Assembly: GCA_048772705.1 (NCBI GenBank)
Contig: JBLWGC010000051.1
Span: 62,001-126,000, forward strand
Origin: Leidyana gryllorum EB-2025a
Taxonomy: Eukaryota > Protista > Apicomplexa
Reading direction: 5' to 3'
Length of the DNA: 64,000 nucleotides
Under the pieces are notes generated by a model. It was not told the DNA's origin. It ran no database searches and saw nothing but the letters and a program-made list of their open reading frames with translations. Both the position numbers and the translations under genes were made by a program. Position 1 is the first letter of the stretch, and each line of letters starts with the position of its first letter. Positions 2,293-46,231 of this stretch are shown here, piece by piece.

Positions 2293-2322
2293 GGTTTTAA
2301 GTAGCTCAAAAAAAATAATGCT

Positions 2323-3558: not shown

Positions 3559-3630
3559 CGAACGTGTGTGCGCGAGTGATTGAACAAGGGGCAAACATTC
3601 AGTTATTAGGTAGTTAGATAGGTAATTGGT

Positions 3631-3673
3631 TCGATGTTGCAGACGCCTCACTCGATGTTGCAGACGCCCTCAC
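3631..3673. repeat. 21-bp tandem duplication in a convergent intergenic region
   Basis: tcgatgttgcagacgcc at 3631 and again at 3652. Confidence 0.9.
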
Positions 3674-3727
3674 CCAATATACCTCTAAAATGACACTATA
3701 TAGACACACCGAAACAACAGAAGAATA

Positions 3728-7616: not shown

Positions 7617-8030
7617 ATGTTGGGCTTCTGGAAAGGGGCACCGGGGATGCTATCCCGACGTTTTGCGGCCACGGCCTCCGTCAGACCTGCACTACAGGTC
7701 ACCGACCGCGCCAAGACCCGCTTTCGCAAACTACTCGAGCGCCGCAACCTACCGGAAGGCGCTGTACAGATATCAGTCCGCGAGAAGGGGTGTGCGGGTC
7801 TGAGTTACGCAATTGACTTTCACAAGACCCCAGACGTGAAGGCTGAGAACGGTCAGAGTCTAGTTACTATAGCCAATGACGGAATTACCCTCATGGTGGA
7901 TCGACGTTCGCTCGGCTACCTCATCGGGTCAGAAATCGACTGGTTAGAGGGCGACGTTTCGAGCCAATTCGTTTTCAAGAACCCCAACGCTAGCCATAAT
8001 TGTCCTTGCGGCAGGTCATTTGCCACTTAA
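7617..8030 (+). CDS. ISCA1: Fe-S cluster assembly protein IscA/Isa1 (HesB family) with probable mitochondrial targeting peptide
   Basis: [22 protein letters not shown]...CPCGRSF; Arg-rich, acid-free N-terminus. Confidence 0.9.
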
Positions 8031-8118
8031 ACGTGAGTCGCACTTTTTGGCCATCAGACAGAAACACCTTTTTTACCCTCAAACCCAACAAAGTTTGTGC
8101 CTGCCTGCAACCTCCTCC

Positions 8119-9399
8119 ATGTCAAGATACGACTCGCTCACCACAACCTTCTCACCTGAGGGCCGCCTCTTTCAAGTCGAATATGCTCTCGAAGCCATCA
8201 ACAACGCTTCCTCAACCTTAGGTAAGGGTTTAACACCCCAACAAAACCCACTGTGCCCTTCATGGCGCCGGCTATCTCGACCGGCGCGCGGCACACACCC
8301 CGCGCAAAGTTGTTCGGGTGGCCACTCAACATGTGTGTGTACACGTGTGCAGGCTAAATTCAGAACCTCAGCATCATTGGGTACCCCCTTTTGAGCGAGG
8401 TACCGCCAAATGCCTCGACGACGTGCTTTGCAATGAATATAATATCTTCACGTATCTCTATGGCCGGATAACGGACGTCTCGCGCATAATGGGGTGATTG
8501 GCAACAGCTTTGATTGCTGGAGCTACATGTCCGTTTCGCGGATGACTCGTTCGTCATCGTCTCGACAAGAATGCCAAGCGCCATTCAAGCGGCATACGTA
8601 TTCTTGATTGTTGTGTGTGTGGACGTTTCGTTGTCCTTCTTATGAGTGTGTCTATTTGTCGTCCTACCCCCGCACAATCAAAGCTTTTGAGTCATTCCAT
8701 TCGCAGGGATTCAGACGACTGGAGGTGTTGTAATTGCTGCTGATAAGATGACCACCTCCAAGTTGCTGGATCCGGGGCATGAGAAGGAGAAGATCTACGT
8801 CGTTGATGACCGAATAGTATGTGCGGTAGCCGGTTGGACGGCTGACGCTAATGTTTTGTTATATCAAGCCCGGTTGGCTGCACAGAGGCATCTTTACAGA
8901 TTCGATGAACGGATACCTGTGGAGCAAATGGTTGTTCAGCTTTGCGATTTGAAGCAAAGCTACACACAGTTCGGTGGCTTGAGGCCTTTTGGGGTTTCCT
9001 TCCTCATCGCAGGATGGGACAAGACGCGGGGCTTCCAATTATTCCATACTGATCCCGCAGGCAACTACGGAGGCTGGCATACAACCGCTATTGGTCAGAA
9101 TTCTGTATCCGCACAGTCCATCCTCAAGCAGGTAAAGGTTCTTTTAAGTGACTGCCCCGCTGACTCTACCTCATTAGGAATGGAACGAAAATCTAACTCT
9201 GGATGAAGGCTTGCTGCTGGCAGCCAAAGTTCTGGCCAAGACTACCGATGCTGCGAGTCCCACGGCAGCTATGACTGAGTTCGCAGTTCTCTACCTGGAG
9301 AATGGGGTGCCCAAACATCGATTCCTGTCGCCCACTGAAGTGGCAGCTCTCTTAGACGAAGCTATCAAAGAGCCTGTGGCCGTCCCTGATGCCATGTAG
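8119..9399 (+). CDS. PSMA4: 20S proteasome subunit alpha-3 (PSMA4), 3 exons
   Basis: [27 protein letters not shown]; [28 protein letters not shown]; introns 8222-8706 and 9132-9177. Confidence 0.95.
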
Positions 9400-14873: not shown

Positions 14874-16094
14874 ATGGCAGGCCGTGGTGGCGGAGGGGGC
14901 GCCAGGACGACGCGAACTCGCGCCGCAAAGCGCCGTAGAAAGCGCGCCCGACAACGAGCTATCGGTGCTCGGACGCTGGGGAGAGCGGGTATGGGCATCC
15001 AGCCCTCCCATGCCTTCTCACACGCGCACCACCGGATCCCTCCTCGGCCACGGCCACCCCCAGGATATCGCCCATTTGGCCCCGGAGCCGCTTGTAGCCC
15101 CTGTGGGGGTCGCCCGCTCGTTAGCCCCGGAGCCGCTTGTAGCCCCTGTGGGGGTCGCCCGCTCGTTGGCCCCGCAGCCGCTTGCAGCCCCGGTGGAGGA
15201 GGCCGTCCTCCGCTTGATGGTCCCGGAGTCGACTGTCATCCCAAAGGCAGTTGTCAACCGCCCTCTACAGCGCCGGTTGGGAGACACCATTGGTACCGCT
15301 ACCACTTACACCGTCCGCCATCCGGAGGCCGGCGGAATGAGGTGGCGACGGAAATGGAGATCGGCCGCCCGAAAGGACTCCCCAGCTGCGGCCTCCGGTG
15401 GGTGGGGGGCGTACTGAGTGTGCTGTTGGTGTTGGGGACTGGACTGTGGTGTATAATCTATGGGAGCCTGGGGAGACTGAGGGCTATTTCGAGTAGTCTA
15501 TTGATTGTGATCGGCATATTGTTGCTGGCAGTGACTGTCTGGGGACCAATTTGGATGCTGACGAGACTAAGATCCAGAAGTGCTGTGTATGGAGCAATTT
15601 ATTGTATGTGTAAGTCGCTCGCCGAACGCGTGTGTCCCGGATGTTTGAGTTTGTGTGTAGTATTTGCCGGCACCGGAGCTGCAGCAGCGCATATCCACGA
15701 AGTGGAGATTGGATTCCGCGCACAACTGATGGAGCTTATTTTGGTGGCATACGTTGCTGCAGCGGCAATGGTTGGGCTGGTTTTATCGGCCATATCGCAG
15801 AAATTCTATGAGGCCTTATGGGAGACTCTGAGGGCCTGCAGGAAGGCAGAAACGTTTGGGAGCGTAGTGGAATGCGCCGACAACGTACGAACGGACGCCG
15901 ATGAAGGCTGTCCATACTTCGTCATTGCCATCACAGAACCGCCAGACGACGAGCAGACCTCCCGTAGCGGAATTCATCTTGACGATAGCTGCTGTGGCCG
16001 GAGAGCGCCGCCTGAGACACTGATAGAGTCTTCTCTTGGGGAGGGTTTTTCTCCCCAAGCAATGATCACAGCCCAGCCAACCTGTCCAGACTGA
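14874..16094 (+). CDS. Lineage-specific membrane protein (about 4 TM) with a repetitive Pro/Gly/Cys/Arg N-terminus
   Basis: Hydrophobic segments in the C-terminal half; shares L.V.GILL.....WG..W with the 16301 ORF. Confidence 0.55.
   Translation: MAGRGGGGGARTTRTRAAKRRRKRARQRAIGARTLGRAGMGIQPSHAFSHAHHRIPPRPRPPPGYRPFGPGAACSPCGGRPLVSPGAACSPCGGRPLVGPAAACSPGGGGRPPLDGPGVDCHPKGSCQPPSTAPVGRHHWYRYHLHRPPSGGRRNEVATEMEIGRPKGLPSCGLRWVGGVLSVLLVLGTGLWCIIYGSLGRLRAISSSLLIVIGILLLAVTVWGPIWMLTRLRSRSAVYGAIYCMCKSLAERVCPGCLSLCVVFAGTGAAAAHIHEVEIGFRAQLMELILVAYVAAAAMVGLVLSAISQKFYEALWETLRACRKAETFGSVVECADNVRTDADEGCPYFVIAITEPPDDEQTSRSGIHLDDSCCGRRAPPETLIESSLGEGFSPQAMITAQPTCPD
15077..15200 (+). repeat. 45-bp tandem repeat, about 2.7 copies
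   Basis: gccccggagccgcttgtagcccctgtgggggtcgcccgctcgtt units; encode PGAACSPCGGRPLVS or, in another frame, LAPEPLVAPVGVARS. Confidence 0.9.
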
Positions 16095-16300
16095 CAGGAT
16101 ACTTTGTGCCAGAGCTTAGGACAATATTTTGGGATCGATGCAGACGCCTGATACTACGTACTACTCAGATTGGATGGTAAGGCGGCGCATTCCGTTTGTG
16201 CGAAGCGCTAAAATGTGATCAATTGTTGTGTTGGTTTGAGGGATGGACGAATTTATGGTAGTATAGTATTAAGAGAGAATATTGTCCGTCTGTATGAGAG

Positions 16301-16924
16301 ATGCAAGACATCAAGGGGTTATTGTTGATTATTTTGTCTGGCATCACCTTGACGGCAGAGCAGGTCGCAGGGTGGGTCTTTATTTATTCTGGGTTGGATG
16401 GTGAAACCTATGAGGCCCCATATCTCCTTGTTTCGGGAATTCTATTGATGATAGCGTGTTCATGGGGCCAATTATGGGTCAGTCTATGCTTTCGATGTGG
16501 TCGAAACTTCTTCCTGTACGGACACACTGTGTGTAAGTTGTCGCGGAGACGGCGTGTGCTTCATCAACATCGATCTGCAGTTCTAGCAGCAGCCATGGTA
16601 GTCCTCGGCTTGTTGATATTATGGAGAGATGACCGAGATTGGTGGGTCGATATACTCATCTCATTGGGTTGGTCTATGCTCACCATCATTGCAAGCGTCG
16701 GGCTGACTGCCATAGGCATCATATGGTATGAGAACTTCATGCAGCCGTTGGTTTTGGGTCTGCATTTGCTTTGTCCCTACCGATACCGTAGATATTTCCG
16801 GCCGCAACCGGAACCTCGTATTCAATTACCTCCAGCGCGAAGCTGGAGTACAGATATTGCGACAGCCCCTCCCTCCACTACCGAGGTGCACCAAGGATCT
16901 TCTTTGAAAGACGAAGAAGTCTGA
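16301..16924 (+). CDS. Lineage-specific membrane protein (about 4 TM), paralogue of the 14874 ORF
   Basis: Hydrophobic segments; LLVSGILLMIACSWGQLW, YGHTVCKL, SVGL...WYE align by eye with the upstream ORF. Confidence 0.6.
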   Translation: MQDIKGLLLIILSGITLTAEQVAGWVFIYSGLDGETYEAPYLLVSGILLMIACSWGQLWVSLCFRCGRNFFLYGHTVCKLSRRRRVLHQHRSAVLAAAMVVLGLLILWRDDRDWWVDILISLGWSMLTIIASVGLTAIGIIWYENFMQPLVLGLHLLCPYRYRRYFRPQPEPRIQLPPARSWSTDIATAPPSTTEVHQGSSLKDEEV

Positions 16925-17797: not shown

Positions 17798-18723
17798 TCA
17801 CATCTTGAACTGGCTCAGAGCGTCCAGGGCGGCAAAGCCGGATTCGGATTCGAGCTTGTGAAGTTCGTCAGCTCCGATGTTAGTGGTGATCTCGGGGTTG
17901 GCGCGGTTGAGAATGCCGATATGGCAAGCTGCAGTGTACAGCGGAGCAATCTTGCGTTGACGGGCCAGTTGATACAAAGTGAAGGACTCCATTTCCATAG
18001 AGTCGACCTTGTTGTTCAACAGGCAGTTAAAAATGCCCTGATTGTCTCCATCGTCAAAGTGAGAGTCTTTGCGGCCCTGAGTACTGTAAAAATAGTCACC
18101 GGCAACATTCAGACCCTCATAGGTCGTCACATTGCGGGCCTTAAGACTCCTGAAAAGATCAAAACGTCGTTCGACACACATCAAAATGACCGGTCAGCTT
18201 ACGCTGTCAGCAGGTCGCAGAGCTCAGCAGTTCCTGGAACGGGCTTGGAGATGAGATATTGACTCTTGGAAATATCGTCAGCATTCATGCACCCACCGGT
18301 CCAGGCGCCATGGTTCAGGTAAGAGATGGAGCAACCCTTGGAGGCCACTACGACGGTGCCAGGCAGCAACTCGGGGTTAAAGAGACCGCAAGTTCCCACA
18401 CGGATAATGGCCATCGGCTCGTCGCAGATGAAAGACGCCTCTCTAACCATAAAGTCCATCATGGGAGCTCCCATACCGATGGCGATGATAGTCACGCCGA
18501 CATCCTTATATTTGCCCGAGTAGATATGGAATTGACGGCTCGAAACAATCTTCTTCTCAATGGTATCCAGGCACTTGGACATGGCCTCCGCGCGAGACGG
18601 ACTGCCAACAGTAATAATGCGGGGGTAGATGTCGCCCTTCTTGGCACCCAAGTGATAGGTGGACCCGTCCGGGAGGAGGAGCATGTCCTTGCCAGTCATG
18701 TAAACCTTGCCATCGCCAGTCAT
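17798..18723 (-). CDS. Uridine phosphorylase (PNP/UDP family 1), 2 exons
   Basis: YHLG, RIITVGSPSRA, IGMGAPMMD, IIRVGTCG, DYFYSTQGR, SMEMES; intron 18150-18202 joins two ORFs. Confidence 0.9.
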
Positions 18724-19878: not shown

Positions 19879-21195
19879 CGATCACCAAAAATACCATTTA
19901 TATCTCAGATCAGTTCGAAATGTGATCTACGCATATTCCAAAATGTGTTCCACCTCATTCAACACCGAAGCTTTACATCACCACGACATCTGAGAGTGCC
20001 AACCGCCAAAGGGACCATTGCCCATCCCCGCAATCTGTGGATATAACACTCAAAAACGATGACTCATTTCTCAATATCTCGAGCTTTGTTGTGGCTGACA
20101 GTCCGGCTGGACTACAACAGTCGGTGGGAAGTCCCCAAGACCTCTTCCTTCTTCCGATTGTGTGTTCCTCAAGCTTTCTTTCTGCGGCCACTCATTCCAC
20201 ATCCTTGACGATCAGCGTTCGATAACCCTCACAAGTTCAATCTTCTCGCAAAGGCACACAGACACGTCAAGCCGATATCCAAACACCAAAAATCTTTGGA
20301 ATCGCAACTCCTCTTTGTCACTGGGTATCTATGGAAGATTGTCTCTCAAACCCATATCCTCATCAGATTGACGCCCAAATTAGCACATATACAAACATGA
20401 GTCGGAAAGGATCTGTGATCCTCCGAGCCGAGACCATCAGACAGCGTCTCACAGTATTCCCCTCTCCCGAATTATGGCCTTCTGGACTACTGGTCACGTG
20501 CCTCGTGTCTTTCGCTCGCCTCGAATGTCAACGGCACCGAGTTTTACTCTGGCCGTAGTAATAAGTGGATAGCAGGCCGTTCTGTGTCTGCGTAGTTCCT
20601 CAAGGACACAGAGGAGCCAAGAGTTTGGAGGGGGGAAACAGGAAGGCCCATTTGGGCATAAAGACTTCCAATGGAGTAGCTGAGGCATCGATAGCTCTAA
20701 TGCCGCAGATCTATGCTCGGAAGCGAGAGTGCAACCTCAGAATCCTCGAATCCGCACTCCACTGCCTGCTTCCGACGCGAAGGGCCTTCTTTTCAGACCA
20801 GCAAGCATTTTCACTCTAGTCACCCCTGCACCGATGTCGCACCATATCGCTTTCCAGTTCACCATATTTCTGAGGGTCCTCAAGTCTCGCAAGCCAGCTA
20901 GCAGACCGGCCAGCCCCACTGAATGTTTCCCGGTTCATCAGTCCTCATCTTAGCAGCCGGACACAGTGTGTGCATACCGTTCGATTTCAAGGATGGCGTG
21001 TGTGTAGAATAGCAGCGGTGCTACCTAACTCGCTCAGCTGCTCCAAATCGATTGGGCACAATTGAGTTTGGGACCCCGCGACAAGACGGGGGAGGTAGCT
21101 CAATACAATCTGCTCAATTTTTAAACACATTCACCTTCCAACCCCGAGTTACTTTTTCACATTCCGGCGACTTTCAAAGTTCTTCGTTGTTGAAC

Positions 21196-22713
21196 ATGAC
21201 CGTTACTGTTGCCGGCCTTCCGATCTCCCAACCCAACAGCCCTACCAGTGGATTGCAGGCTGTGAGGGAGAAGGGTGCCAACATGAATCATATCAAGTTC
21301 GCTTGGCCCATTCAACCCATCCATTACACTTACCCTCAGAAGTTCCCTCTTGACGAGATCCAAGTCGAGTCTGAGGCGATCCATGACGATATCGAGGATG
21401 CAATCCGTTGCGCCCATGAGGCGCAAGTGGTGTTCGCTGCCCTTCCGATTGCTCAGAAACAGACCATCATTAAGACTATTCGTGAGGTTTGTGAGGAATT
21501 CCGCGCCGATTTTGCTCTGGCTGCGTGGTCTGAGACTGGTCGTGGCAGATATGAGGATAAGTACGCAAAGCAATCTGTTGCTATTCATTCAACTCCGGGT
21601 ATGGAAGATTTAGAAGTTCGAAGCTTCACCGGCGACAGTGGTCTCACCGTCATTGACTACGCTCCATATGGCGTTGTAGGTGCAGTGACTCCGGTGACCA
21701 ATCCTACTGCGACGGTGATTAACAACTCGATCACGTTGCTTTCCGGCGGCAACGCTGTGGTATTTAATCCGCACCCTGCTGCTATGAGGTGTACCTGCAG
21801 AGCGATTGCCGTGGTTAACATGGCAGTGGTTCTGGCTGGCGGTCCTGTATCGCTTGTCTCTACCGTTAAGATCCCTACTATCCAATCGGGTGGCATCATG
21901 ATGAACCATCCGATGGTTGCCTGTAACTTGATCACTGGCGGTCCCGCAGTCGTCAATGTGGCGATGAAATCCGGCAAGAAGTCCTTCTGTGCCGGCCCGG
22001 GTAACCCGCCTGTCGTTGTAGATGAGACCGCTGATTTGGCTCGCGCCGCTAAGGGCATCTACGAGGGTGCTTCCTTCGACAACAATATGATTTGTTCTGA
22101 TGAAAAGGAGACCTTTGTGGTCGAAAGTGTTGCCGATGAACTGATCGAAGAGTTCAAGAAATTGGGCGCATATGTCGCCAAAAATGAAGACGAAATCGAA
22201 GCGATCACCAAAATTGTGTTCGCTGGAAATGTTCCTGAAGATTATGTGCACGGCGCGGTCGATAAAGACCTCGTCGGTTCAAGTGCCAACGTCATCTTGA
22301 GAAAGGCCGGCATCGAAGGGGCTGCTGACATTGGCGAGCAATGCAGACTGATTGTATGTGACGTCCGCCAAGGACATCCTCTCGTCTGGACAGAGCAACT
22401 AATGCCTGTCATGCCCATCGTTCGCGTACCTGATTTCGATGCTGCCTTGGATCTGGCCGAGCGCGCGGAATACAATTACAAACACACGGCTTCTGTGTAT
22501 ACTACCAACCTCCATCGTGTCACCGACATGTCTCGACGACTTAATACTTCCATCTTTGTCGTCAACGGTTCTCACACTGCTGGGCTTGGAGTCGGAGGTG
22601 AAGGATATACCTCTTTCTCTATCGCCGGCACCACGGGAGAGGGTATGACTCGCCCTCGCACCTTTGTTCGTGAGAGACGTATGACTCTTGTGAATGCTCT
22701 TAACTTCGTCTGA
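21196..22713 (+). CDS. CoA-acylating aldehyde dehydrogenase, EutE/PduP family, intronless
   Basis: ETGRGRYEDK, GDSGLTV...APYGVVGAVTPVTNPT, NSITLLSGGNAVVFNPHP, TGGPAVV, AGPGNPPVVVDETAD, SFDNNMIC(catalytic)SDEKE, EQLMPVMP, HTAS, GGEGYTSFSIAGTTGEG.T.PRTF.R.RR. Confidence 0.93.
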   Translation: MTVTVAGLPISQPNSPTSGLQAVREKGANMNHIKFAWPIQPIHYTYPQKFPLDEIQVESEAIHDDIEDAIRCAHEAQVVFAALPIAQKQTIIKTIREVCEEFRADFALAAWSETGRGRYEDKYAKQSVAIHSTPGMEDLEVRSFTGDSGLTVIDYAPYGVVGAVTPVTNPTATVINNSITLLSGGNAVVFNPHPAAMRCTCRAIAVVNMAVVLAGGPVSLVSTVKIPTIQSGGIMMNHPMVACNLITGGPAVVNVAMKSGKKSFCAGPGNPPVVVDETADLARAAKGIYEGASFDNNMICSDEKETFVVESVADELIEEFKKLGAYVAKNEDEIEAITKIVFAGNVPEDYVHGAVDKDLVGSSANVILRKAGIEGAADIGEQCRLIVCDVRQGHPLVWTEQLMPVMPIVRVPDFDAALDLAERAEYNYKHTASVYTTNLHRVTDMSRRLNTSIFVVNGSHTAGLGVGGEGYTSFSIAGTTGEGMTRPRTFVRERRMTLVNALNFV

Positions 22714-23227: not shown

Positions 23228-24274
23228 ATGGCAGTTGAAACTTGTGGAGTAGCTGCCTTTGACGAAAAGGCCGAACTCAAGCCATACACCTATGAGATAC
23301 GGGAACCCGAGGCGAAAGACGTACTGATAGACGTCCATTACTGCGGTATCTGTCACTCCGATATCCATGCGGGGCGATCCGAGTGGAATCCAGCAATCTA
23401 TCCGTTGGTACCGGGGCACGAGCTGACAGGTATTGTACGACAAGTCGGATCAGACGTGACAAAATTCAAAATTGGAGACCGGGTCGGTGTGGGCTGCCGC
23501 GTTGGAAGCTGCCGGAACTGTCGAGAGTGCGTAAACGGCGAAGAACAGTATTGTTTGAAGGCCATTCGTACCTACAATTCGCTCGATCACAACGGTCAAC
23601 CAACTCGCGGGGGTTATGGCCGGGTAATGGTCATACCCGAGGACTTTGTTCTGCGCATTCCGGACGGTATGCCCATGGATCGAGCCGCCCCTTTACTGTG
23701 CGCTGGCATCACTACTTATTCGCCTATCGTGCGTAACGGGCTGAATAAGGGTGGCAAGAGAGTAGCAGTGATCGGGCTTGGCGGGCTGGGCCACATGGCA
23801 GTCCAGTTTTTGGCAAAGATGGGCAACGAAGTGACTGTTATTACTCGGTCTAAATCCAAGGAGACTGAGGCAAAGGCGTTGGGAGCCCTTCACTTTGTGG
23901 CTGCAAATGAAGACCCCGAGTTCAAGTCTATGCGCAGAGCATTTGACTATATACTGGATACTGTTGCCACTGACAAACCTATGGACATCTATCTGGATCT
24001 GCTCGATGTTGGCGGGACGCTGGTCACAGTTGGCTTACCACCCAAAGATGTACCGCTCAAACTCAATCCAAGTGCGCTGATCAACGGACGTCGCAACTTT
24101 CAAGGCTCACTGATTGGCGGAATCCAGGAGACTCAGGATATGTTAGATTACTGCTCTGCAGCTCAGGTGCTGCCTCAGATCGAAGTGATAAAGCTCGATT
24201 ACGTCAATGAAGCTTGGAAAAGAGTGCTGGCAGGCGATGTCAAGTTCCGATTCGTCATTGATCACACGGCGTAG
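23228..24274 (+). CDS. Zn-dependent NADP alcohol dehydrogenase (cinnamyl-ADH/YahK/AdhC-like), intronless
   Basis: CGICHSD, PGHE, structural Zn SCRNCREC...YC, APLLCAGITTYSP, GLGGLGH, GSLIGG, DVKFRFVID. Confidence 0.95.
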   Translation: MAVETCGVAAFDEKAELKPYTYEIREPEAKDVLIDVHYCGICHSDIHAGRSEWNPAIYPLVPGHELTGIVRQVGSDVTKFKIGDRVGVGCRVGSCRNCRECVNGEEQYCLKAIRTYNSLDHNGQPTRGGYGRVMVIPEDFVLRIPDGMPMDRAAPLLCAGITTYSPIVRNGLNKGGKRVAVIGLGGLGHMAVQFLAKMGNEVTVITRSKSKETEAKALGALHFVAANEDPEFKSMRRAFDYILDTVATDKPMDIYLDLLDVGGTLVTVGLPPKDVPLKLNPSALINGRRNFQGSLIGGIQETQDMLDYCSAAQVLPQIEVIKLDYVNEAWKRVLAGDVKFRFVIDHTA

Positions 24275-24568: not shown

Positions 24569-25813
24569 ATGCAATATTCACTTGATCAACTCGACCTACT
24601 ACCATGGCCTTGCAGCCCAGATGGCACTCCACTCACACCCCGCCAATTCCACAACTCCTGCCAAGTTCCACCTGCAGAAGAGAGGCTCTCAATAGAGAAA
24701 TTGCACTCAATGATTCATGCAGCTGCATCAGCAACAGTCGCCCTCAAACAGACCATAATTAACGTCTCAGTCGCCTATCTCTCAACCCTCTTCCACCGAA
24801 TCCCCCTCCCCACTCAAAACAGCTCCTTCTTCGTCGCGCCTCCACATCTGCCGCAACTCAACGATCCCGTCCACTGGATGGAGTCCCTTCAAATACCCCC
24901 AGCCTATAAGCCCGTATTTGCCCTTCTCGCAGACTGCCACAACATAGATGAAACCTTCAAGCTTCTCCGCCTCAGCCTCGAGATCCTTCTTCCCATCGAG
25001 CGACACCACCAACTTGTGGCCATCAACATAGTCCCTCACATCCTGGAGCCTCCCCGAGCTCTAAGCCCTGCAGTCGCTGCACAAATCGACACCCTGGACA
25101 TTGTGCGCTACTTCTTGTGTGTGAGATCACACTCCTCGCCAAGTTGCCCGATCTTGCACTACCTCCTAGCTCGAATTCCCCAACGATGCGAGTGCACACC
25201 GACCCCGTCCCACCAACCTCTCCGGCCAATTGCAAATAGTCTGGGCATTGCCGTGCACTACTGGCTCTGTGCTATCACTGGCCAGCTAACCTCCCCCGCC
25301 TTCCTCATCCCCCGATTGCATCAGCTACCCCTTTCCTGGGTTGAAGCATTGTGCGAAAGCCTTGTGGAGGCGGTCAAATCTTGGTTTCTCACTCGTAGTA
25401 AAGTGCAGTCCGTAACTACCGGCCACTACCTCACCGTGCCTTGGCATCTTCATTGGGGTCATCTCATTTCTTGGGCAAATCATTTCACCGTTTCATCATA
25501 TCTTCTACCTGTTTTCTCCTTCTGTGATTCGATCGCCAGGGACGACATCGCAGAAGCCATCAAACACTACTCGCTGATTCTACAAATCATCTACGGTTGC
25601 CAGGTCCGCGAGGTGTCGAGTCTAACTACTGCGACAAACAAGCGGGGGCCTATGCGCTGCCAAGGGTCCAATCAGAATATTACGCTCCATCATTACAAGA
25701 AATTACGCGTGTCTGAGTCGGACTCGCCTTCCACTCACACTCTATCCACGGCCACTCATTCATCTATCACAACAACACTTTGTCCTACACTTGAGGCAAA
25801 TTACGTTACTTAG
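24569..25813 (+). CDS. Hypothetical protein (may splice to the next ORF)
   Basis: 414-aa ORF; no family recognised. Confidence 0.5.
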   Translation: MQYSLDQLDLLPWPCSPDGTPLTPRQFHNSCQVPPAEERLSIEKLHSMIHAAASATVALKQTIINVSVAYLSTLFHRIPLPTQNSSFFVAPPHLPQLNDPVHWMESLQIPPAYKPVFALLADCHNIDETFKLLRLSLEILLPIERHHQLVAINIVPHILEPPRALSPAVAAQIDTLDIVRYFLCVRSHSSPSCPILHYLLARIPQRCECTPTPSHQPLRPIANSLGIAVHYWLCAITGQLTSPAFLIPRLHQLPLSWVEALCESLVEAVKSWFLTRSKVQSVTTGHYLTVPWHLHWGHLISWANHFTVSSYLLPVFSFCDSIARDDIAEAIKHYSLILQIIYGCQVREVSSLTTATNKRGPMRCQGSNQNITLHHYKKLRVSESDSPSTHTLSTATHSSITTTLCPTLEANYVT

Positions 25814-25912
25814 AAATCTGCTTGGGAGGGGCAAACCTGTCCAAGACTTCCCACTCCGAGATAAGATGGGCTCAACGTGGTTTGTTTGAATGACAATCAT
25901 TGAATAGCACAC

Positions 25913-27055
25913 GTGTGTGGTAACACAATGCGAAGGCTGCACAAGGCGCATTTGATAGATGCCATCAATACTGGCAATTATGTGGACTACTATGGCACTT
26001 GCGAGTATCGGGACGATGTCGACGGATGGATGCAAGCGTTGTTTCAAGAACGTGAAGATTTTTGGATCGCTTCCTACCGTGAATCCTTACAAGACTCTAA
26101 AAGTGTCTTGTTTGCCCACTTTCTGCCAATGTTGAAGACGCTGGATACCCCTTATGTTCGTAGCAGAAAACCCGATGATGGACTCAAAATAGCTGCCAAG
26201 GGCGACGATCATGATCTTGAAGATGAAGACGATGATGATGATGATGATCAGCTCGTGACTTTCGAAGACGAAGTGAGCGAGTTACCTGAAACTAAAACTA
26301 TCAAAGGTGATCAAGTGATAGACGAGGATCTTCGAATGTCAGAATCAGTTGCAGAAAAGATCCGGTACTCCGACAATGCTGCAAAGTTCCAGGATTGTAG
26401 ATTCAACTGCTCAGTGGAAGACCTTATGAACTTGATCAGCGACACCCGGGACCGCCGACCGCTCGCCCATACCACCAAGCGCTCCATATCGAAACGCAGC
26501 GACCGTATGCGAGCTCTGGACCTCTTCTTGTGGGTGGTCAGGCAACAAGAAGCTCGAAACAGATGTGCGGTTCGAGTCAGACGTCGAGTTCCAGATGCTG
26601 AGCTGTTCAGCATCGGAAACCGCAAAGAGCGCATCACGGTTGGGTTGCGTCACGTGATTGCTCTCCAGGACCGCTATCCTCATGCGACATGGTGTGCTCA
26701 GTCGCATTTGATCAAACGAGAGGAGCGCCCTGTCAAAGTAGCTGTCAAGCCCCCCGAGCTAGCCAGCACCATCAGCACGGACGTGAGCTGCGACGCCTAC
26801 CTGAAAATTCAGCAACAGATCAAACTACATGTTCCACGTCGAACACAGTGGAACATCGGAGCCCCGAAAAGGGTTCGTTTTGCAAGAGCTGGGCTAGAAG
26901 GAGGCGAATGCGTTAGTGGAGTATTCTATGATGCGCTCTTGGATGATGCTGATGCATCACGTGCCATCAAAACCGTGCCATTGAAGCGTCCTCTAGTTGA
27001 ATGTTTGGCACTCCCGCTCCCAACGCCCCCCGGTCCAAGCACTTTGTGTCTGTGA
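25913..27055 (+). CDS. Hypothetical protein or exon with an acidic tract
   Basis: 380-aa ORF with a poly-Asp run and a KRVRF motif. Confidence 0.5.
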   Translation: MCGNTMRRLHKAHLIDAINTGNYVDYYGTCEYRDDVDGWMQALFQEREDFWIASYRESLQDSKSVLFAHFLPMLKTLDTPYVRSRKPDDGLKIAAKGDDHDLEDEDDDDDDDQLVTFEDEVSELPETKTIKGDQVIDEDLRMSESVAEKIRYSDNAAKFQDCRFNCSVEDLMNLISDTRDRRPLAHTTKRSISKRSDRMRALDLFLWVVRQQEARNRCAVRVRRRVPDAELFSIGNRKERITVGLRHVIALQDRYPHATWCAQSHLIKREERPVKVAVKPPELASTISTDVSCDAYLKIQQQIKLHVPRRTQWNIGAPKRVRFARAGLEGGECVSGVFYDALLDDADASRAIKTVPLKRPLVECLALPLPTPPGPSTLCL

Positions 27056-31874: not shown

Positions 31875-33551
31875 TCATGCGTCATTGATGTCTTTGCTAC
31901 TCAACTTGATGGGACACTTCGTGTTCCAGTGGGGGATTGTGTACTCTTGCTCGGTGAAACGGCTTCGAGTGATCGACAGGACGTTTCCACCTTCGCCACT
32001 TTCGTCGTAGCCATGATCTGCAACAGCCAAGCTGTTCCACTTGACCTGTTCAAGTCGTCCTTCTGGCTCGTTCCATCTGATGAAACACATCGGCGCCTGT
32101 CGGTCGGCGCTGGGTGCATACGCCTTGTACTCTCCACTTTGATCAAATACCACGAGATTAAGATCATAGAACTGAGCCAGGAAGGGCCAGACGAGTTCTT
32201 CACCCAAACCGTCTTCAAGACCCCATTTCAGGACCAAAGAGACGAGGGCAGAGTCTTCGAGGTGATTCGCGATATCGTTAAATCTGCTCCTAGTTGACAT
32301 GAGAATCTCCGAGAGGGATGATTGGATGTATTTGACGAGAGCGCCACCGAATACCATCTTGGCCTGGGGAGCCTCAAAGTCAATTGTCTCATCTCTCCCT
32401 GCAGCCGGAGCGATGGTGATCTTCTTGTCGACTGACACCCAACGACTGGACGCCGTCTGGAGATCTGCCAACAGCTTTTGCAGAGAATAGAGCTTTGTCA
32501 TTCCTCTGGTCGGATCTTCACCGTCAAGGACGGTCTTGAAGCGATTTATGATTTGATCACACATCTGTGAAGCGGCTGAGACCATTAGCGGACGACCAAT
32601 GCGCTTATCAGTGGGTAGATCGATCTTTTTAATGGCCTTCTTGACCCCCTCGTCACTGAGACAGGGCGAATGTACAGCTCGTTGCATGCCTGGGAACGAT
32701 CGCTGCCAACACTCTGCGAAGCTGTTCCCCGTCAGCTTAAACTCCTCAATTGCTTCTGGGACTCCTTCGGTTTTGACGGACTCAACCAACTGGTTTAAAC
32801 GCTCCAACTTGGTTTCGATGTGGTCGAAACGGGCATTGCACCACCTGTTGATCTCCTCTTTGATCGCACTCGGTGCGGTAACCACCTCACTGCCCCCCGA
32901 GAAGGCGGTGGTGTTTGCAAACCCAATATATTGTGATGCCCAGACCGAATAAAAAGTCTTGTAGAGACGAGCTGCGCGGTCCTGTTTCCCAACAACTCCC
33001 CACGCCCCCAAAGACAAAGCTCTCGCCAACAAATCCCCCACTCGGAGAGGAGCAACGCCCAGTCCACTGCTCGCTGCAATAGGCCGGACCTCAACACGTC
33101 GGGTGTGCAAGAGGTCTTTCAACATTGGCATCTCGTTGTGGTAATTGGACTGAGTTTTATCGCGTCGGTCACTCGCTTTGCGCATCTCCAGAAGCGCGTC
33201 GTTTGATATCAAATTGCAATCCTTGTCTCCGTTGGCGAAATGCCCATCAAAGTTTCGCGGCATATGCAGCGTTTCATGAGCACTCCCCAATCGCAGAAAC
33301 GCTTCTGACGCTAATTGAAACATCTTTCTCTCTTCCTCAATGGTAGCCTGAGGATTATTATCGAACAGAGATGCTGTTGACTTGATCAACTCCTTTCGCG
33401 CCTCTTTCCAGTCCTTGCTGGAGCTCAGGTCTCTTTCACTTTCCTCGTACGGACTCTGCTTGGCTACAGATACAATGGCATAACCCATTGCGGTCCATAT
33501 TGACTGGGGGTCATTATTAGTGCGGGATGCACATACAGGTGGTCGACCCAT
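31875..33551 (-). CDS. Hypothetical protein (about 558 aa), possibly with a degenerate OTU-like C-terminus
   Basis: Long intronless ORF; ATG at 33551 follows the kinase stop at 33574 after an A-run. Confidence 0.6.
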   Translation of the reverse strand: MGRPPVCASRTNNDPQSIWTAMGYAIVSVAKQSPYEESERDLSSSKDWKEARKELIKSTASLFDNNPQATIEEERKMFQLASEAFLRLGSAHETLHMPRNFDGHFANGDKDCNLISNDALLEMRKASDRRDKTQSNYHNEMPMLKDLLHTRRVEVRPIAASSGLGVAPLRVGDLLARALSLGAWGVVGKQDRAARLYKTFYSVWASQYIGFANTTAFSGGSEVVTAPSAIKEEINRWCNARFDHIETKLERLNQLVESVKTEGVPEAIEEFKLTGNSFAECWQRSFPGMQRAVHSPCLSDEGVKKAIKKIDLPTDKRIGRPLMVSAASQMCDQIINRFKTVLDGEDPTRGMTKLYSLQKLLADLQTASSRWVSVDKKITIAPAAGRDETIDFEAPQAKMVFGGALVKYIQSSLSEILMSTRSRFNDIANHLEDSALVSLVLKWGLEDGLGEELVWPFLAQFYDLNLVVFDQSGEYKAYAPSADRQAPMCFIRWNEPEGRLEQVKWNSLAVADHGYDESGEGGNVLSITRSRFTEQEYTIPHWNTKCPIKLSSKDINDA

Positions 33552-33573
33552 CCTACAATTTTTTTTTGCACCT

Positions 33574-36500
33574 CTACGTAAATGTGGCAGATAACCATGG
33601 GTCCAGTAGGGCGTCCTTGGCCGTGATGCGGCTTTCCGGGTTGACATCAAGAAACTTCTTAACCAAATCCTGTTAGACGTTGTTAGGCTGCTGCGTCAAA
33701 ATGAATAGTCAATCATACCTTGGCTAAGGGGGACACTCGACCCCATACGGTCTCTGGCTTAAAGACCAGCTTGATCTGATGTCCCCTCAGAATGGGTATA
33801 AAGTTTTTCTTGACATCCACGAGGCTCGACAATTCGCTCTGGGGTGCCTGAAACCCGCTCTTCCCGTCGCGCTGCGACCCCATCGAGTTGGGCTTCAGAA
33901 TCTCAAAGACTGGAAATGCGCCCCCTGACAGGAGTTGGTACATCACCACCCCCAGACTCCATAGATCAGCGCTCGTCGTGTACCTTAAACCGTTCAGGAC
34001 CTCTGGTGCTGCGTACGCAGCGGTACCCAAAGCCTCGTCCGCATATCGGGTCATACCACCACGGCTCTCCCCAGCCGCCAATTCGGAAGGTGGTGCCACA
34101 ATCTTACTCAATCCAAAGTCAGTGATCTTTGGCGTAATGGCTTCTTTCGCTAATCTCGTTCCAAAGAACCTGTCAACCTTCCATATCAAATTCCGGTCAA
34201 TGTCCAATGATATTCGTTCAACTCCGCTTCTGATCCGTCGTACCAGTTCCTCGTTTACGAAGAAGTTAGGCACCCTTTCATTCTCGTCCAATGTCGACTG
34301 AACTGTCAGCGGTCGCGTGCCCGGATGGTGGGTTTGACTTCGTCGGCTCTTCCGCAATCTGTTGGGATCCTTGGACCCTTCCAACATGCGCTCCTCTCTC
34401 CACTCCAAACAGTGCAGGAATAACCAAAAGTTCATTATCTGTGTCAATGGCGAGCAATTGTCTGAAAGCAGCTCAGTATGCCTTGCGCGCTTACCTCCAC
34501 GGCTGTGGCTCTCCTCCTGGCATTCGCATCCGACAGGGCGCTCGAGGTCGTGGGAGACAGATTATCGTGACTCCTCGTACCCCCTCGCGTGCGATACCGA
34601 TCATTGACACCGCCCGACCCCCGTTCACGACCTTCACCGTCTTCCTCTTGAGTCTCACTGTTCTGATGATGCGGCTGCGGATCAGCTGAGCCGGTGCTTC
34701 GGGAGTGGAATTGCCGTCGCACGGTAAAGTCTCCGCTCATTGCGTTACGCATGCTACTCGGACTCAGGACTTTCGGTGACGTCACTCTGGTGAGAGCCGG
34801 GGCAGGAGGAGGGGACCCTTGTTCCAGACTCATTATATTCTGTCGAATGTTCATTCGACCGTATGTGCCACTGGCCTGATACATATCCACCGTGTCCAGA
34901 CTCGATTGTCTCGACATATCGGTGGGACTCGCCCCGCCACTCTCCAAATCGTCCTCAGGGCCTCGTCCAGATGAATCGGACAGTGCTCCTTCGTCTGCAC
35001 TCAGATCCATAGTTCCGTTAGGGTTGTGACTCCCCACTCCAGTCGCTATGCCAGTGGTGTCACCACGCCCCTCTCCCCCCTCGGCTTCAGTTTCCGTGAC
35101 GTCGTTATCGGCCTGTTGGACCATAATGGCAGGGGGTCTCACGGGCTCCAGAGCTGAGGGAGTTGTACCTTTATCACCCCACTCTATGCCCGAGCGGGCC
35201 TCCCCCCGTCCTTGAACCAGAATGCGTTTGATCTGAGTCTTGGCGCGGGTGGACTTTCGATCCATATTCACTCCACCCCCGGGACTTGCCGCCTCTGTGC
35301 TGAGTGAGGGCAGGTTTGGGATCAGTTGATGCATGGGAAACTTGAGCTGAGGAACAAGAAGTCGTAGCAAGACGTTGTCTGGTTTGAGATCCCGGTGGAT
35401 AACGTTACGTTTGGGGGAGTGAAGAAAGGTGAGACCACTCAACACCCCCCTTACAATTTCTTTAGCAATCCATTCGGGAATCCATATGCAATAGGGCGGC
35501 CGATCTGATAGTGTCCAAATGTGTGCGCAAACACAAAACACCCTACTTACCCTGAGGCTGCTGTTGCCCATCCGTGCCAGCTTGTGTTCCAGACGCATAT
35601 ATCTGCTGAAGTCCGGTGTTAATGTCGCGAATGGTCTCAATAAGTCTCCGGAGATCTCCACTGGGCCCCCACTCCATGATAATGTACAGAAAGTCATGGG
35701 TGTTGTAGACATCCAGCAGCCGAATCAGATTGGGATGGCATAACAACTGAAGGACAGCGACTTCTGTTCGCTGGAATCGTTGAACAGCTAAATCGTCTTC
35801 ACTGTCGTCATCGTGGCCCCCGCCATTGTCAGGTCGACGCGCTCCGCACAGGTTCCACCGGCGTTTCCGAGCGAAATGGCAATGTGGCTGATTGTTTGCA
35901 GAGCCGGGTCGTCGTGGACATATCCATCCAAAACAGGCATTTTCTCTCGCCTCAGCATCGTTGGAAGATGTGGTGTCTAATGGCTGACCTCCGCTTGGGC
36001 TTAACGCGGTCCCCACGTGGGGTCTTCGTCGTTGACCTGTGGGCTTGCGCATGATCTTGACAGCTACCTTCTCTTGAGTGCTTCTATTCAAGGCTCTATA
36101 AACCGTGGCGAATTTGCCTCTGCCCAGCGGTTCTTGCAGTAGATAGAGATCATGGAAAACACCCTCGGTTACGCCGGCTGCCTGACTCAGATGCTTGATC
36201 CAACGGTCTCTGTCGTAGCGAGTCTGCGCATACAGAACGGCTCGTTGATGATTCTCGTTTCTGAACCATCGGAGTTCGAATCCCCAGCGTCGCTCAAACT
36301 TGGAGGGAGCTTCTGTCTGCACATCAATAATGTCCTGTCCTTCAACACTCTTAGCCTTGCGCGCTGCTGCCGTAGCACTTGCGTAGTCCTCTTGAGGGTC
36401 GTCGAGAGTCTTATCCACGCGACAGCCCTCAATGATGATAGCCCGGGTAGGGGTTCGCTGGTTGGTGTTCCGGTATGAGTACAGGAATCGGTCCCGCAGT

Positions 36501-40677: not shown

Positions 40678-41120
40678 CTCTTTGTGTCGAGCACACCGGC
40701 CGCTGTCACAAAAGTCCCGAACATGGGCCACTCTCAGATCTTGCCAAGTTGGTAGACATCACAACCCCCAATGCGCCGATGGTGACTTTGCGCGAACAAA
40801 ATCCGGATGGAATAGATTGCGCCTTCCATCCCGGCCGCACGGGAGTGGTAATAGCCCTTGCACTCCCGGAGAAAGCGCAGGAGTTCATCTTTACCCCGAT
40901 GGGCTCCAGTCTGTGGGCCGGTTGCTCGCCATTACCTCCGCGCAGATAGAGAACGAGAGGACCATAAGAACTAAGGGGTCTGCTAATAAAACGAAAAATC
41001 AGTGACCGACTATTCAGACGCGGTCGATTCGGGAGCCCATTCACATTGAGGGTGTCTCTGTTCGTTTGTCGAGCCCTTCTCCAACACCCCACCGTTAGAT
41101 GAGTTCTCTGATCAGGTTGG

Positions 41121-44008: not shown

Positions 44009-45070
44009 CTACACACTGTCTACTGGATAGCTATTTTTGACATCGATCACGAAACGGAATCGGACGTCAGACTTCAGTACCCTCTCGTAGGCCTCATTAA
44101 TTTGGTCACCCCTGACGAGCTCGATGAGCGGTAAGATTTGTCGTTCGGCACAATAGTTGAGCATCTCTTGGGTTTGAGCAATTCCTCCGATCGGGGAACC
44201 CATGATGCGACGACGGCGCAGCACCAACCCCCAAACATCGATCTTTGGCATATCGCTACTCGGGGGCGCTCCGACAACTATCATAGTGCCGTCCTTGCGG
44301 AGTAAATTGAGATATTTTGACATCGGTTTGTTGGCAGACACTGTGTCCAGTAATAGATCCAACTTTTCCGCTTCCTCTGCAAATTCGTCGTCTGTACAAA
44401 TAGTCTTTGTCGCTCCGAGTTCTTTGGCCAGATCTCGTTTGGCCGGTGTCCGAGTTATGACGACAACTTCATTTCCGAAGCTGGCCGCAAATTGCACCGC
44501 CATGTGCCCCAGACAGCCAAATCCAATTACACCCACACGCATGTTGCCTTTTTTGGCTCCACAGTGTACCAAGGGAGAATAGGTCGTGATTCCAGCACAG
44601 AGAAGGGGAGCAGCGCGGTCCATAGGCAGATTCTCCGGTAGGTGGAGAGCAAAGTGCTCGTGGGTCACAACAAACTTCCCGTAACCGCCCTGTGTGATTT
44701 GACCGTCTTCATCCTTCATCCCGTAAGTCTGAAGCTGCTCGTCACAGAACTGCTCGTATCCCTCATTGCATTCCTCACACCGCCGACAACTGCCGACCAA
44801 ACAACCGACAGCGACCCGATCTCCCACTTTGTGCTTGGTGACCTTATCCCCCACTCGCACAACTCGTCCTGTGAATTCGTGGCCCGGGACTAAAGGATAC
44901 GGTACCGGAAACCATTCGGACTTGACAGCGTGAATATCAGAATGACAGATTCCACAAAACTCAACTTCGACGAGCACATCGTTGTCCTTCAGATCCCGAA
45001 CTTCGTACTCGTGTGGGGTCAAGGGGGTGGTAGCCGAGTGAGCAGCATAGCCGATGTTTTTGATTGTCAT
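44009..45070 (-). CDS. Zn-dependent NADP alcohol dehydrogenase (CAD/YahK-like), copy 2
   Basis: Start MTIKNIGYAA by alignment with paralogues; CGICHSD, PGHE, LLCAGITTYSP, GFGCLGH, DVRFRFVID. Confidence 0.94.
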   Translation of the reverse strand: MTIKNIGYAAHSATTPLTPHEYEVRDLKDNDVLVEVEFCGICHSDIHAVKSEWFPVPYPLVPGHEFTGRVVRVGDKVTKHKVGDRVAVGCLVGSCRRCEECNEGYEQFCDEQLQTYGMKDEDGQITQGGYGKFVVTHEHFALHLPENLPMDRAAPLLCAGITTYSPLVHCGAKKGNMRVGVIGFGCLGHMAVQFAASFGNEVVVITRTPAKRDLAKELGATKTICTDDEFAEEAEKLDLLLDTVSANKPMSKYLNLLRKDGTMIVVGAPPSSDMPKIDVWGLVLRRRRIMGSPIGGIAQTQEMLNYCAERQILPLIELVRGDQINEAYERVLKSDVRFRFVIDVKNSYPVDSV

Positions 45071-45175
45071 CTCGCAGTGCCAAGTGGAAAATTGGGTGTG
45101 GGACTGCGCATTTTGGCCCTTCAAAGCCGTCTCCCCCTTTTCTTTTGCATTGTGGGAGACCGAAATTAAGGCAGG

Positions 45176-46231
45176 ATGCCGGTCGACAATATTGGATACG
45201 CCGCTCTTGAAAAGGCCAAACCACTCGAACCCTGGAAGTATCAGATTCGCGACCCCAAACCCAATGATGTTCTGATCGAAGTCGCTTACTGTGGGATCTG
45301 CCATTCAGACATCCACGCAGCCCGCGGTGAATGGAATGGCGTCATCTTCCCACTCGTCCCGGGTCACGAGTTCACCGGAATAGTTATCAAAGTCGGAGAC
45401 GGCGTCACAAGACACAAAGTTGGCGATCGTGTGGCTGTGGGCTGTATGGTCGGGTCCTGTCGCGAGTGTCAGAACTGTCAAGACGGTCTACAGCAGTACT
45501 GCCCCAAACGCGAAGCCACCTACCGATACAGATACCCAGATGGAGAAATCACATACGGCGGATATGGACGATACGTCGTAGCAGCCGAAGATTTCGTCCT
45601 TCGGGTGCCCGACAAACTGCCGATGGATCGCGCCGCACCCCTCTTGTGCGCTGGCATCACCACCTACTCTCCCCTTGTGCACCTTGGACTCCAAACTGGG
45701 GGTCGCAAGGTCGGCATTCTCGGACTTGGCGGCCTTGGACACATGGCCCTGCAATTCGCTGCTGCTTTCGGCAATGAAGTCACCGTTCTATCTCGATCGG
45801 AAGGGAAACGCGAACTCGCCAAGAGTCTGGGAGCCAGCCACTTTTTGGTCACGGACGAAGACTACGCATCACACGTCCAGACACTCGATGTCATCCTGGA
45901 CACTGTCTCGGGCCAGAAACCCATGGAAAAGTATGTCAACTTGCTGAAGCGAGATGGTACGCTGATGCTTTTGGGGGCTCCGCCTGCGGGCGAAGAGAAT
46001 ACGCTCCCGGTCTTTCCTCTAATAATGAAGAGAAGAAACATTATGGGATCCATTATCGGTGGCATCCCCGAAACCCAAGCCATGTTGGACTACTGCGCTG
46101 AGAAGATGATCCTCCCAGTCATAGAGGTGGTGACTGGCGAGAAAATAAACGAATGCTATGATCGAGTCGTCAAGGGGGACGTCCAGTTCCGCTTTGTCAT
46201 CGACGTCAAGGGCGGCCATCCTTCTGTATAG
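45176..46231 (+). CDS. Zn-dependent NADP alcohol dehydrogenase (CAD/YahK-like), copy 3
   Basis: CGICHSD, PGHE, LLCAGITTYSP, GLGGLGH, DVQFRFVID; divergently oriented from copy 2. Confidence 0.95.
   Translation: MPVDNIGYAALEKAKPLEPWKYQIRDPKPNDVLIEVAYCGICHSDIHAARGEWNGVIFPLVPGHEFTGIVIKVGDGVTRHKVGDRVAVGCMVGSCRECQNCQDGLQQYCPKREATYRYRYPDGEITYGGYGRYVVAAEDFVLRVPDKLPMDRAAPLLCAGITTYSPLVHLGLQTGGRKVGILGLGGLGHMALQFAAAFGNEVTVLSRSEGKRELAKSLGASHFLVTDEDYASHVQTLDVILDTVSGQKPMEKYVNLLKRDGTLMLLGAPPAGEENTLPVFPLIMKRRNIMGSIIGGIPETQAMLDYCAEKMILPVIEVVTGEKINECYDRVVKGDVQFRFVIDVKGGHPSV

Follow-up and report, generated by a model that had tools for sequence, protein, structure and literature searches.

The EutE/PduP family of aldehyde dehydrogenases is well known, as is the lateral gain of anaerobic enzymes by protists, and the conversion of acetyl-CoA to ethanol is carried out by AdhE in Cryptosporidium, Giardia and Entamoeba. 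In the SPU (sugar-phosphate utilization, DERA-linked) type of bacterial microcompartment (BMC), DERA splits deoxyribose-5-phosphate to give glyceraldehyde-3-phosphate and acetaldehyde, and the aldehyde dehydrogenase (AldDH) converts acetaldehyde to acetyl-CoA (PMC11585597); in the model of this pathway, uridine phosphorylase supplies deoxyribose phosphate to DERA and AldDH. Here, we describe a gene for an aldehyde dehydrogenase (ALDH) of apparent SPU ancestry in the gregarine Leidyana gryllorum EB-2025a (Apicomplexa). The gene is located at positions 21196..22713 (+) of a 64,000-nucleotide stretch of DNA (hereafter, the window), which represents positions 62001-126000 of the 368-kb contig JBLWGC010000051.1 (C51); the assembly, GCA_048772705.1, comprises 15.5 Mb in 237 contigs. 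In our best explanation, to which we assign a probability of roughly 0.8, the gene product would be a shell-free, CoA-acylating ALDH that descends from an SPU microcompartment enzyme and has replaced AdhE.

When compared with the SPU AldDH of Chloroflexota and Actinomycetota (PMC11585597), the gregarine ALDH shows about 50% identity over the catalytic core and the same cysteine loop (F-D-N-N-x-x-C-x-x-E-K), and the SPU enzymes are its phylogenetic sister or parent group; in contrast, the gregarine gene has no encapsulation peptide, no shell and no RpiB-DERA operon, and it belongs to a nuclear paralog family of host-like composition. With PduP/EutE (PDB 5jfl and 4c3s; E. coli EutE) it shares the fold, the catalytic loop and a passing score for the family model NF011927, but in the trees E. 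coli EutE is placed far away, as an outgroup (branch of about 1.2 changes per site), and none of the Pdu/Eut signature enzymes is found in the genome context of the gregarine gene. The N-terminal domain of AdhE (Cryptosporidium, Giardia, Entamoeba and many bacteria) is homologous to the gregarine ALDH (E 5e-51), and the job proposed here, acetyl-CoA via acetaldehyde to ethanol, is the same; however, AdhE comprises about 870 aa with a fused C-terminal iron-dependent alcohol dehydrogenase (Fe-ADH), whereas the gregarine ALDH comprises 505 aa without such a fusion, and its alcohol step would fall to separate zinc-dependent alcohol dehydrogenases (Zn-ADHs).

Gene prediction and protein family

The open reading frame (ORF) extends over positions 21052..22713 (+), and translation from its first ATG at 21196 yields 505 aa without internal stops. 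The coding sequence (21196..22713, +; stop codon included) was assigned from the ORF and the family models; it is intronless, and in a search of its own genome it was recovered as a contiguous match of 100%, free of stops. The translation holds the motifs TGDSGLT, TPVTNPT, AGPGNPPVVVDETAD, SFDNNMICSDEKE and GGEGYTSFSIAGTTGEGMTRPRTFVRERR. A single Aldedh domain is found with Pfam (E 1.7e-35), and the NCBIfam model for the EutE/PduP type (NF011927, PRK15398) is matched with 557.7 bits (cut-off, 403) by residues 54-504, which correspond to model positions 26-464 of 465, i.e. to its full length. The cut-offs were not reached for the models of bifunctional AdhE (NF010378; 242.6 bits, cut-off 951) and of the EutH-associated ACDH (205.8 bits, cut-off 620). 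The best solved structures are those of microcompartment aldehyde dehydrogenases (5jfl/5jfm, E 1e-105; 4c3s, E 4e-100), and the structures of AdhE ALDH domains rank below these (E about 1e-51; 5e-51). An earlier, sequence-only reading of the window had reported an intact and intronless EutE/PduP gene with these motifs and had set it apart from AdhE; both statements are borne out, the latter also by the complete lack of Fe-ADH domains in the genome (see below).

The presumed catalytic cysteine, Cys300 (codon 22093..22095, +), lies in F-D-N-N-M-I-C-S-D-E-K and in a nearly invariant alignment column; the F-D-N-N-x-x-C-x-x-E-K loop is kept in 3/3 ALDH paralogs of the genome, in a Chloroflexota homolog and in E. 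coli EutE. The nucleotide-binding loop A-G-P-G-N-P-P (A266-P272) also falls in conserved columns, and is present in the other paralogs of the genome and in E. coli EutE. An AlphaFold2 model of the protein (44-row alignment) had a mean pLDDT of 84.8. In comparisons with paralogs and orthologs, pN was 0.12-0.27 and pS was saturated (0.72-0.78), which points to strong purifying selection. The gene product is predicted to be a CoA-acylating aldehyde dehydrogenase (acetaldehyde + CoA + NAD(P)+ <-> acetyl-CoA + NAD(P)H).

Phylogeny and bacterial relatives

Relatives were collected from 5.8 billion proteins in a word-indexed search with two queries, the window ALDH and the most divergent paralog of the same genome, and the top 120 matches of each were considered. 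The best named matches were from Gregarina sp. 'Pseudo', Gregarina sp. 'Poly', Blabericola migrator, Protomagalhaensia sp. and G. niphandrodes, with 52-62% identity and several paralogs per species; the ALDH is thus carried by five named species or isolates of Gregarinoidea (genera Gregarina, Blabericola and Protomagalhaensia), and environmental contigs were among the matches, too. The gregarines are followed by hundreds of bacterial proteins of about 470-485 aa that are annotated as EutE (46-52% identity; Chloroflexota, Anaerolineae, Acidimicrobiia, and also Actinomycetota). The second query led to the same taxa, and no named eukaryote outside this one apicomplexan superfamily was found among the top 120 matches of the two queries.

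Trees were calculated in three quick IQ-TREE runs (LG+C20+F+G4, PMSF) of 107, 83 and 47 rows, with SH-aLRT as support; E. coli EutE served as outgroup in all three trees, and the AdhE N-domain only in the 107-row tree. In each of the three, all eukaryotic and eukaryote-like ALDH rows form one clade (SH-aLRT 99-100), its sister group is a Chloroflexota clade of 470-aa proteins (SH-aLRT 99-100), and the pair is nested in the SPU AldDH radiation (SH-aLRT 95-100 for the relevant branches), i.e. these quick maximum-likelihood trees place it among AldDH of loci with DERA, RpiB and shell genes. In the eukaryotic part of the trees, the paralog on contig C36 and an environmental ortholog together form the sister group of the window gene; the paralog on contig C159 branches much deeper, beside another environmental sequence, which indicates that the duplications are old.

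Horizontal transfer from bacteria, as proposed in the sequence-only reading, is supported by the nesting of the gene inside bacterial microcompartment aldehyde dehydrogenases. Of the bacterial metabolosome origin that had been suggested, the transfer itself stands; the donor type is SPU rather than Eut or Pdu proper, and the transfer, as judged from the trees, is old and common to Gregarinoidea (shared by five gregarines), neither private nor recent. Grouping of the protein with a eukaryotic clade, widespread and vertically inherited, had been named as an outcome that would speak against transfer. Grouping with a eukaryotic clade was obtained in the literal sense, but the clade is narrow and lies inside the bacteria, and this still argues for horizontal transfer.

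The 80 best bacterial loci, with one genome per GTDB species, were collected and searched by tblastn with the proteins of one Anaerolineae locus as probes. In this Anaerolineae locus, the order by Pfam is RpiB, DeoC aldolase, BMC-H, BMC-P, AldDH and tandem BMC-T. Within 10 kb of AldDH, BMC-H was found in 73/80 loci, BMC-P in 75/80, BMC-T in 64/80, DeoC in 67/80 and RpiB in 66/80. The Chloroflexota sister clade is shell-linked as well, as one of its members adjoins two EutN_CcmL genes and CsoS1D_N, and the genome of another (L004, see below) contains a BMC-H gene. As the donor type, the SPU microcompartment of Chloroflexota-like bacteria is supported by these sequence comparisons.

The bacterial AldDH nearest to the gregarine clade is that of Ca. 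Aquidulcis (Chloroflexota; L004), in which the encapsulation peptide is kept. Its 15.5-kb locus contains no shell, DeoC or RpiB gene, and the only BMC-H gene of this genome is located on another contig (L086), i.e. in a satellite arrangement. A co-transfer of DERA together with AldDH was considered and is not supported, since the DERA of L. gryllorum is an ordinary deoC equivalog that is only about 35% identical to SPU DERAs.

N-terminus

The bacterial relatives start with a short helix, amphipathic and of the encapsulation-peptide type, to which a variable linker is attached. At the place of this peptide, the window ALDH has a poorly conserved Pro/Ser-rich stretch that is predicted to be disordered (residues 1-30; 21196..21285, +; from AlphaFold2, alignment and hydrophobic moment). 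Residues 37-56 (W-P-I-Q-P...Y-P-Q-K...D-E-I-Q; 21304..21363, +; from alignment and AlphaFold2) form a segment that carries a motif of the type [YF]-P-x-[K/R]; in the gregarine copies, this conserved segment is placed about 15-20 residues before the ALDH core. Its [YF]-P is kept in the gregarine copies that were aligned or inspected, the deepest branches included, with variation at the fourth residue; the bacterial copies are without the segment.

The maximal helical hydrophobic moment in the first 45 residues had a mean of 0.59 in 80 bacteria, and the 25 eukaryotic rows averaged 0.42 (Mann-Whitney p 1e-6); it was 0.32 for the window ALDH, with prolines inside its best segment. In the AlphaFold2 model, no N-terminal helix was obtained for residues 1-30 (pLDDT about 30), and residues 31-50 had a pLDDT of 65-86. 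The previous impression that the N-terminal extension of about 55 residues is not an amphipathic helix is confirmed by both the moment, in comparison with the bacterial mean, and the model. In the gregarine clade, as far as can be read from the sequences, a disordered stretch and a conserved Y-P-x-K segment have taken the place of the lost encapsulation peptide; besides the trees, this N-terminus, shared and derived, also argues that the eukaryotic clade had a single origin. The N-terminus of the window ALDH shows no amphipathic presequence with positive charges, which suggests a cytosolic location.

Shell, AdhE and partner enzymes in the genome

The 15.5-Mb assembly, which is possibly incomplete, gave no match to the shell domains PF00936 and PF03319 at E<=1; the control genomes were positive. 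The lack of shell genes, noted before for the window, thus holds for the assembly as a whole, and the suggestion that the enzyme was repurposed outside a shell agrees with this result and with the loss of the encapsulation peptide. The ALDH is not a working microcompartment component, because two features that define cargo, i.e. peptide and shell, were both searched for and neither was found.

Also the Fe-ADH domain (PF00465) gave no match in the whole assembly, hence there is no AdhE in the genome. In Table S6 of Salomaki et al. 2021 (PMC8051059), AdhE is absent in 6/6 Gregarinoidea, and present in 9/9 Cryptosporidium, 4/5 Urosporoidea, Monocystis and Cephaloidophora; the named eukaryotes with the EutE-type enzyme represent exactly the superfamily that is AdhE-less in this table.

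The genome encodes PFO/PNO (including an 1815-aa open frame), two ADP-forming acetyl-CoA synthetases, a true deoC (DERA) equivalog (203 bits; cut-off, 117), and three genes of the PDC/indolepyruvate-decarboxylase family. One of the PDC-like genes, found by profile match, is located on the same contig as the ALDH gene at a distance of about 75 kb (C51:158254-160128; L107:755-2629), and two further ones were found elsewhere (L108:1389-2828(-); L109:2604-3704); these genes could supply acetaldehyde. In a cockroach transcriptome, gregarine transcripts for an 'indolepyruvate decarboxylase' and an 'aldehyde dehydrogenase' were listed together (PMC8856671). A gene for a Zn-ADH of 348 aa (Ahr/YahK-like, NADP-type; Pfam ADH_N and ADH_zinc_N) is predicted 515 bp downstream of the ALDH gene (23228..24274, +). 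Its score for the NCBIfam model Ahr is 278.7 bits, under the cut-off of 470, and homologs with 53-57% identity are found in gregarines and in many bacteria; the adjacent Zn-ADH is a candidate partner for the interconversion of acetaldehyde and ethanol.

Paralogs and gregarine orthologs

The genome contains three ALDH copies, all of them intronless and with the cysteine loop kept. The two other copies are 72% (C36:132765-134216, -) and 52% (C159:27503-28834, -) identical to the window ALDH. An ORF of 448 aa is located directly upstream of the latter on the same strand (L003:2946-4292(-)).

The G. niphandrodes ortholog, whose protein is already in the databases as 'aldehyde dehydrogenase', is encoded in an independent assembly, on a scaffold of 374 kb with NIPA-transporter, RING-box and GST genes as neighbors, and this eukaryotic neighborhood is independent evidence for nuclear integration. 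One paralog of Gregarina sp. 'Poly' (P0016) has Ser in place of the catalytic Cys and Thr in place of the preceding Ile (M-T-S-S-D-E-K), and forms a long branch in the trees; this copy may be inactive or may have been re-purposed. On an environmental gregarine-like contig (L100; Logan SRR11177099, 6638 bp), two convergent Aldedh genes are predicted (1273-2748(+) and 3269-4621(-)), which indicates that local duplication of the ALDH family occurs in relatives. No poly(A) tails were seen on two short environmental contigs with orthologs (L099 and L101).

Proposed role and alternative explanations

We propose that the ancestor of the gene was the core aldehyde dehydrogenase of an SPU microcompartment in a Chloroflexota-like bacterium, and that it would have entered the ancestor of Gregarinoidea (terrestrial eugregarines) in a single old transfer. 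The amphipathic encapsulation peptide would then have been lost, with the disordered stretch and the new Y-P-x-K segment in its place, and the gene would have been duplicated (three paralogs here) and kept under purifying selection. With no shell, the enzyme would be soluble and cytosolic and would act at the acetaldehyde/acetyl-CoA node of low-oxygen metabolism, beside PNO, the ADP-forming acetyl-CoA synthetases, the PDC-like decarboxylases, DERA and the Zn-ADHs. The ALDH and a separate Zn-ADH would take over, as two enzymes, the function of the bifunctional AdhE: under hypoxia, acetyl-CoA derived from PNO would be reduced to acetaldehyde by the ALDH and further to ethanol by the Zn-ADH, with the consumption of two NAD(P)H. 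The observations underneath this proposal are the family, the catalytic motif, the tree position, the loss of the peptide, the absence of shell and AdhE, and the presence of the partner enzymes; acetaldehyde as the substrate is suggested by analogy, through the SPU ancestry, and a net direction of acetyl-CoA reduction towards ethanol under hypoxia is the one that we favor, at about even odds.

For the origin of the gene, two other explanations were considered. A bacterial contamination or a chimeric contig might be suspected for an intronless gene whose nearest non-gregarine relatives are bacterial-type. The contig is, however, eukaryotic, as seen from its split proteasome gene, its Ubl+CAP-Gly, TPT and kinase genes, and the GT-AG intron in a uridine phosphorylase-like gene (all described below), and the intron-bearing eukaryotic genes are found on either side of the ALDH gene within 368 kb, just as the gene had been described at the outset. 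The GC content along the window is flat (0.48-0.56), and the ALDH gene has a GC content of 0.517 and a GC3 of 0.541, which are the values of its neighbors and unlike those of the closest Chloroflexota homologs (GC3 0.69-0.73). The correlation of its codon usage (RSCU; r 0.38, with neighbors spanning 0.30-0.78) does not discriminate between foreign and native genes. Further, the two other paralogs are located on other large contigs (334 and 303 kb), orthologs are found in the independent G. niphandrodes scaffold and in four other gregarine data sets, and the encapsulation peptide is lost in all gregarine copies; on this assembly evidence, contamination or chimerism is close to refuted. Vertical descent from an ancient microcompartment enzyme of eukaryotes or Asgard archaea could be invoked because SPU-type microcompartments have recently been reported in Hodarchaeales (PMC12747264), but the same study derives these operons from Myxococcota, and archaeal loci were not found among the 80 best GTDB loci. 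The narrow distribution, with one apicomplexan superfamily as the only named eukaryotes among the top matches, and a Chloroflexota sister group nested in bacteria render such a descent very unlikely.

As to function, the same enzyme with the same origin may work mainly in the oxidative direction, i.e. convert acetaldehyde to acetyl-CoA and NADH, with the formation of acetate and ATP by the ADP-forming synthetase. Its acetaldehyde would be provided by the PDC-like decarboxylases, by DERA acting on deoxynucleosides, or by insect-gut ethanol, and the enzyme would open a way from pyruvate to acetyl-CoA that does not depend on PNO, and would be an aldehyde detoxifier at the same time. This is the direction of the ancestral SPU microcompartment (PMC11585597), and it is consistent with the three genes of the PDC/indolepyruvate-decarboxylase family (one of which shares the contig), the bona fide deoC, the two ADP-forming synthetases and the uridine phosphorylase-like gene 2.5 kb upstream; it would also fill a gap in G. 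niphandrodes, for which Salomaki et al. found no pyruvate-to-acetyl-CoA enzyme (PMC8051059). On the other hand, the genome of L. gryllorum does encode PNO, the lineage-specific absence of AdhE points to a replaced reductive function, the adjacent ADH is of the NADP-type and aldehyde-reductase-like, and the role of the PDC-like genes, by substrate, is putative; a mainly oxidative enzyme is thus a serious candidate that we place clearly short of an even chance. The enzyme is reversible and the two directions are not exclusive, and three old paralogs leave room for both. Improbable, in our view, is that the ALDH or some of its paralogs act on a different aldehyde/acyl-CoA pair (propionaldehyde, lactaldehyde, succinate semialdehyde or longer chains): several substrates are covered by the EutE/PduP family, the divergence of the three paralogs (52-72% identity) leaves room for specialization, and three esterase and two ADH genes 17-23 kb downstream hint at a xenobiotic or ester metabolism, but the nearest bacterial kin is SPU-type, with acetaldehyde from DERA, and neither a diol dehydratase nor an ethanolamine lyase nor a glycyl-radical partner is encoded in the window.

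Several points weigh against the preferred explanation of a shell-free, SPU-derived replacement for AdhE. The trees are quick ones with SH-aLRT as their only support, and their rows include neither PduP nor other BMC classes nor the SPU AldDH of Asgard archaea. The best PDC-like gene reaches 372.8 bits for TIGR03393 (indolepyruvate decarboxylase), far under the cut-off of 946, and its substrate assignment is putative. A conserved ALDH-ADH gene pair had to be rejected, as both paralogs and the G. niphandrodes ortholog are without an ADH gene within about 9-10 kb. The absence of the gene in other gregarine groups rests on incomplete transcriptomes. The expression signal comes from relatives only, in that the names of EukProt contigs with ALDH orthologs carry coverage values of about 500-2300; ADH orthologs in the assemblies of relatives likewise have high coverage values in their contig names, and the high values for the ortholog contigs would fit a core metabolic enzyme.

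Implications

Literature searches on gregarines and anaerobic protists in combination with EutE, PduP or acylating ALDH returned no report, and in the main texts of Salomaki et al. 2021 (PMC8051059) and of the Porospora genome paper (PMC9250747) no ALDH of the EutE type is mentioned. In the literature searched, neither the SPU ancestry nor the exchange of the lost peptide for another N-terminus nor the complementarity with the AdhE loss in Gregarinoidea was found reported. The gene would be a clean and datable addition to the set of genes from bacteria through which the energy metabolism of anaerobic protists was rebuilt, and from an unusual donor context, i.e. that of a cargo enzyme obliged to lose its packaging signal in order to work in a eukaryote; for microcompartment biology, it would be a natural experiment on AldDH without a shell. 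It offers an explanation for the lack of AdhE in terrestrial eugregarines, and suggests how gregarines connect pyruvate, acetaldehyde, ethanol and acetyl-CoA, which was left open in the published reconstructions (PMC8051059, PMC9250747).

In its widest form, the proposal would make Gregarinoidea the first eukaryotes known with a domesticated microcompartment core enzyme, with a swapped targeting peptide, with AdhE replaced in combination with Zn-ADHs, and with a PNO-independent route to acetate and ATP in addition; this full combination is speculative, and we consider it rather unlikely to hold in all of its parts. If true, the sequence pyruvate, acetaldehyde, acetyl-CoA, and acetate plus ATP would explain the 'missing' step in G. 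niphandrodes. The Y-P-x-K segment might mediate a shell-free clustering of acetaldehyde-handling enzymes.

Neighboring genes in the window

A gene for a proteasome alpha-type subunit (8020..9206, +; Pfam Proteasome on 8748-9203) is split by an intron of about 485 nt (exons 8020-8221 and about 8707-9206); its N-terminal exon, in the ORF 8020..8394, contains the motif Y-D-x-x-x-T-x-F-S-P-E-G-R-L. Also nearby are a tubulin-cofactor-like Ubl+CAP-Gly gene, a TPT transporter gene and a kinase gene. A uridine phosphorylase-like gene with two exons (17798..18723, -), whose family was named by eye from typical PNP/UDP motifs, contains a GT-AG intron of 53 nt (18150-18202, -) across which the frame is continuous. 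It is located 2.5 kb upstream of the ALDH gene on the opposite strand, a proximity that may be due to chance; its product may feed deoxyribose-phosphate to DERA. Three long ORFs that flank the ALDH gene (14874-16924, 24569-27055 and 31875-33650) have no Pfam match, and probably encode lineage-specific gregarine proteins.

Further downstream, three Abhydrolase_3 esterase paralogs are predicted on the minus strand (39703-40731, 41121-42101 and 42588-43631), followed by two Zn-ADH genes, all seemingly intronless. These two Zn-ADH paralogs are 54% (44009..45304, -) and 57% (45176..46231, +) identical to the one adjacent to the ALDH gene. Their ORFs overlap head to head by about 130 bp (45176-45304), hence at least one of the true starts is probably located further in.

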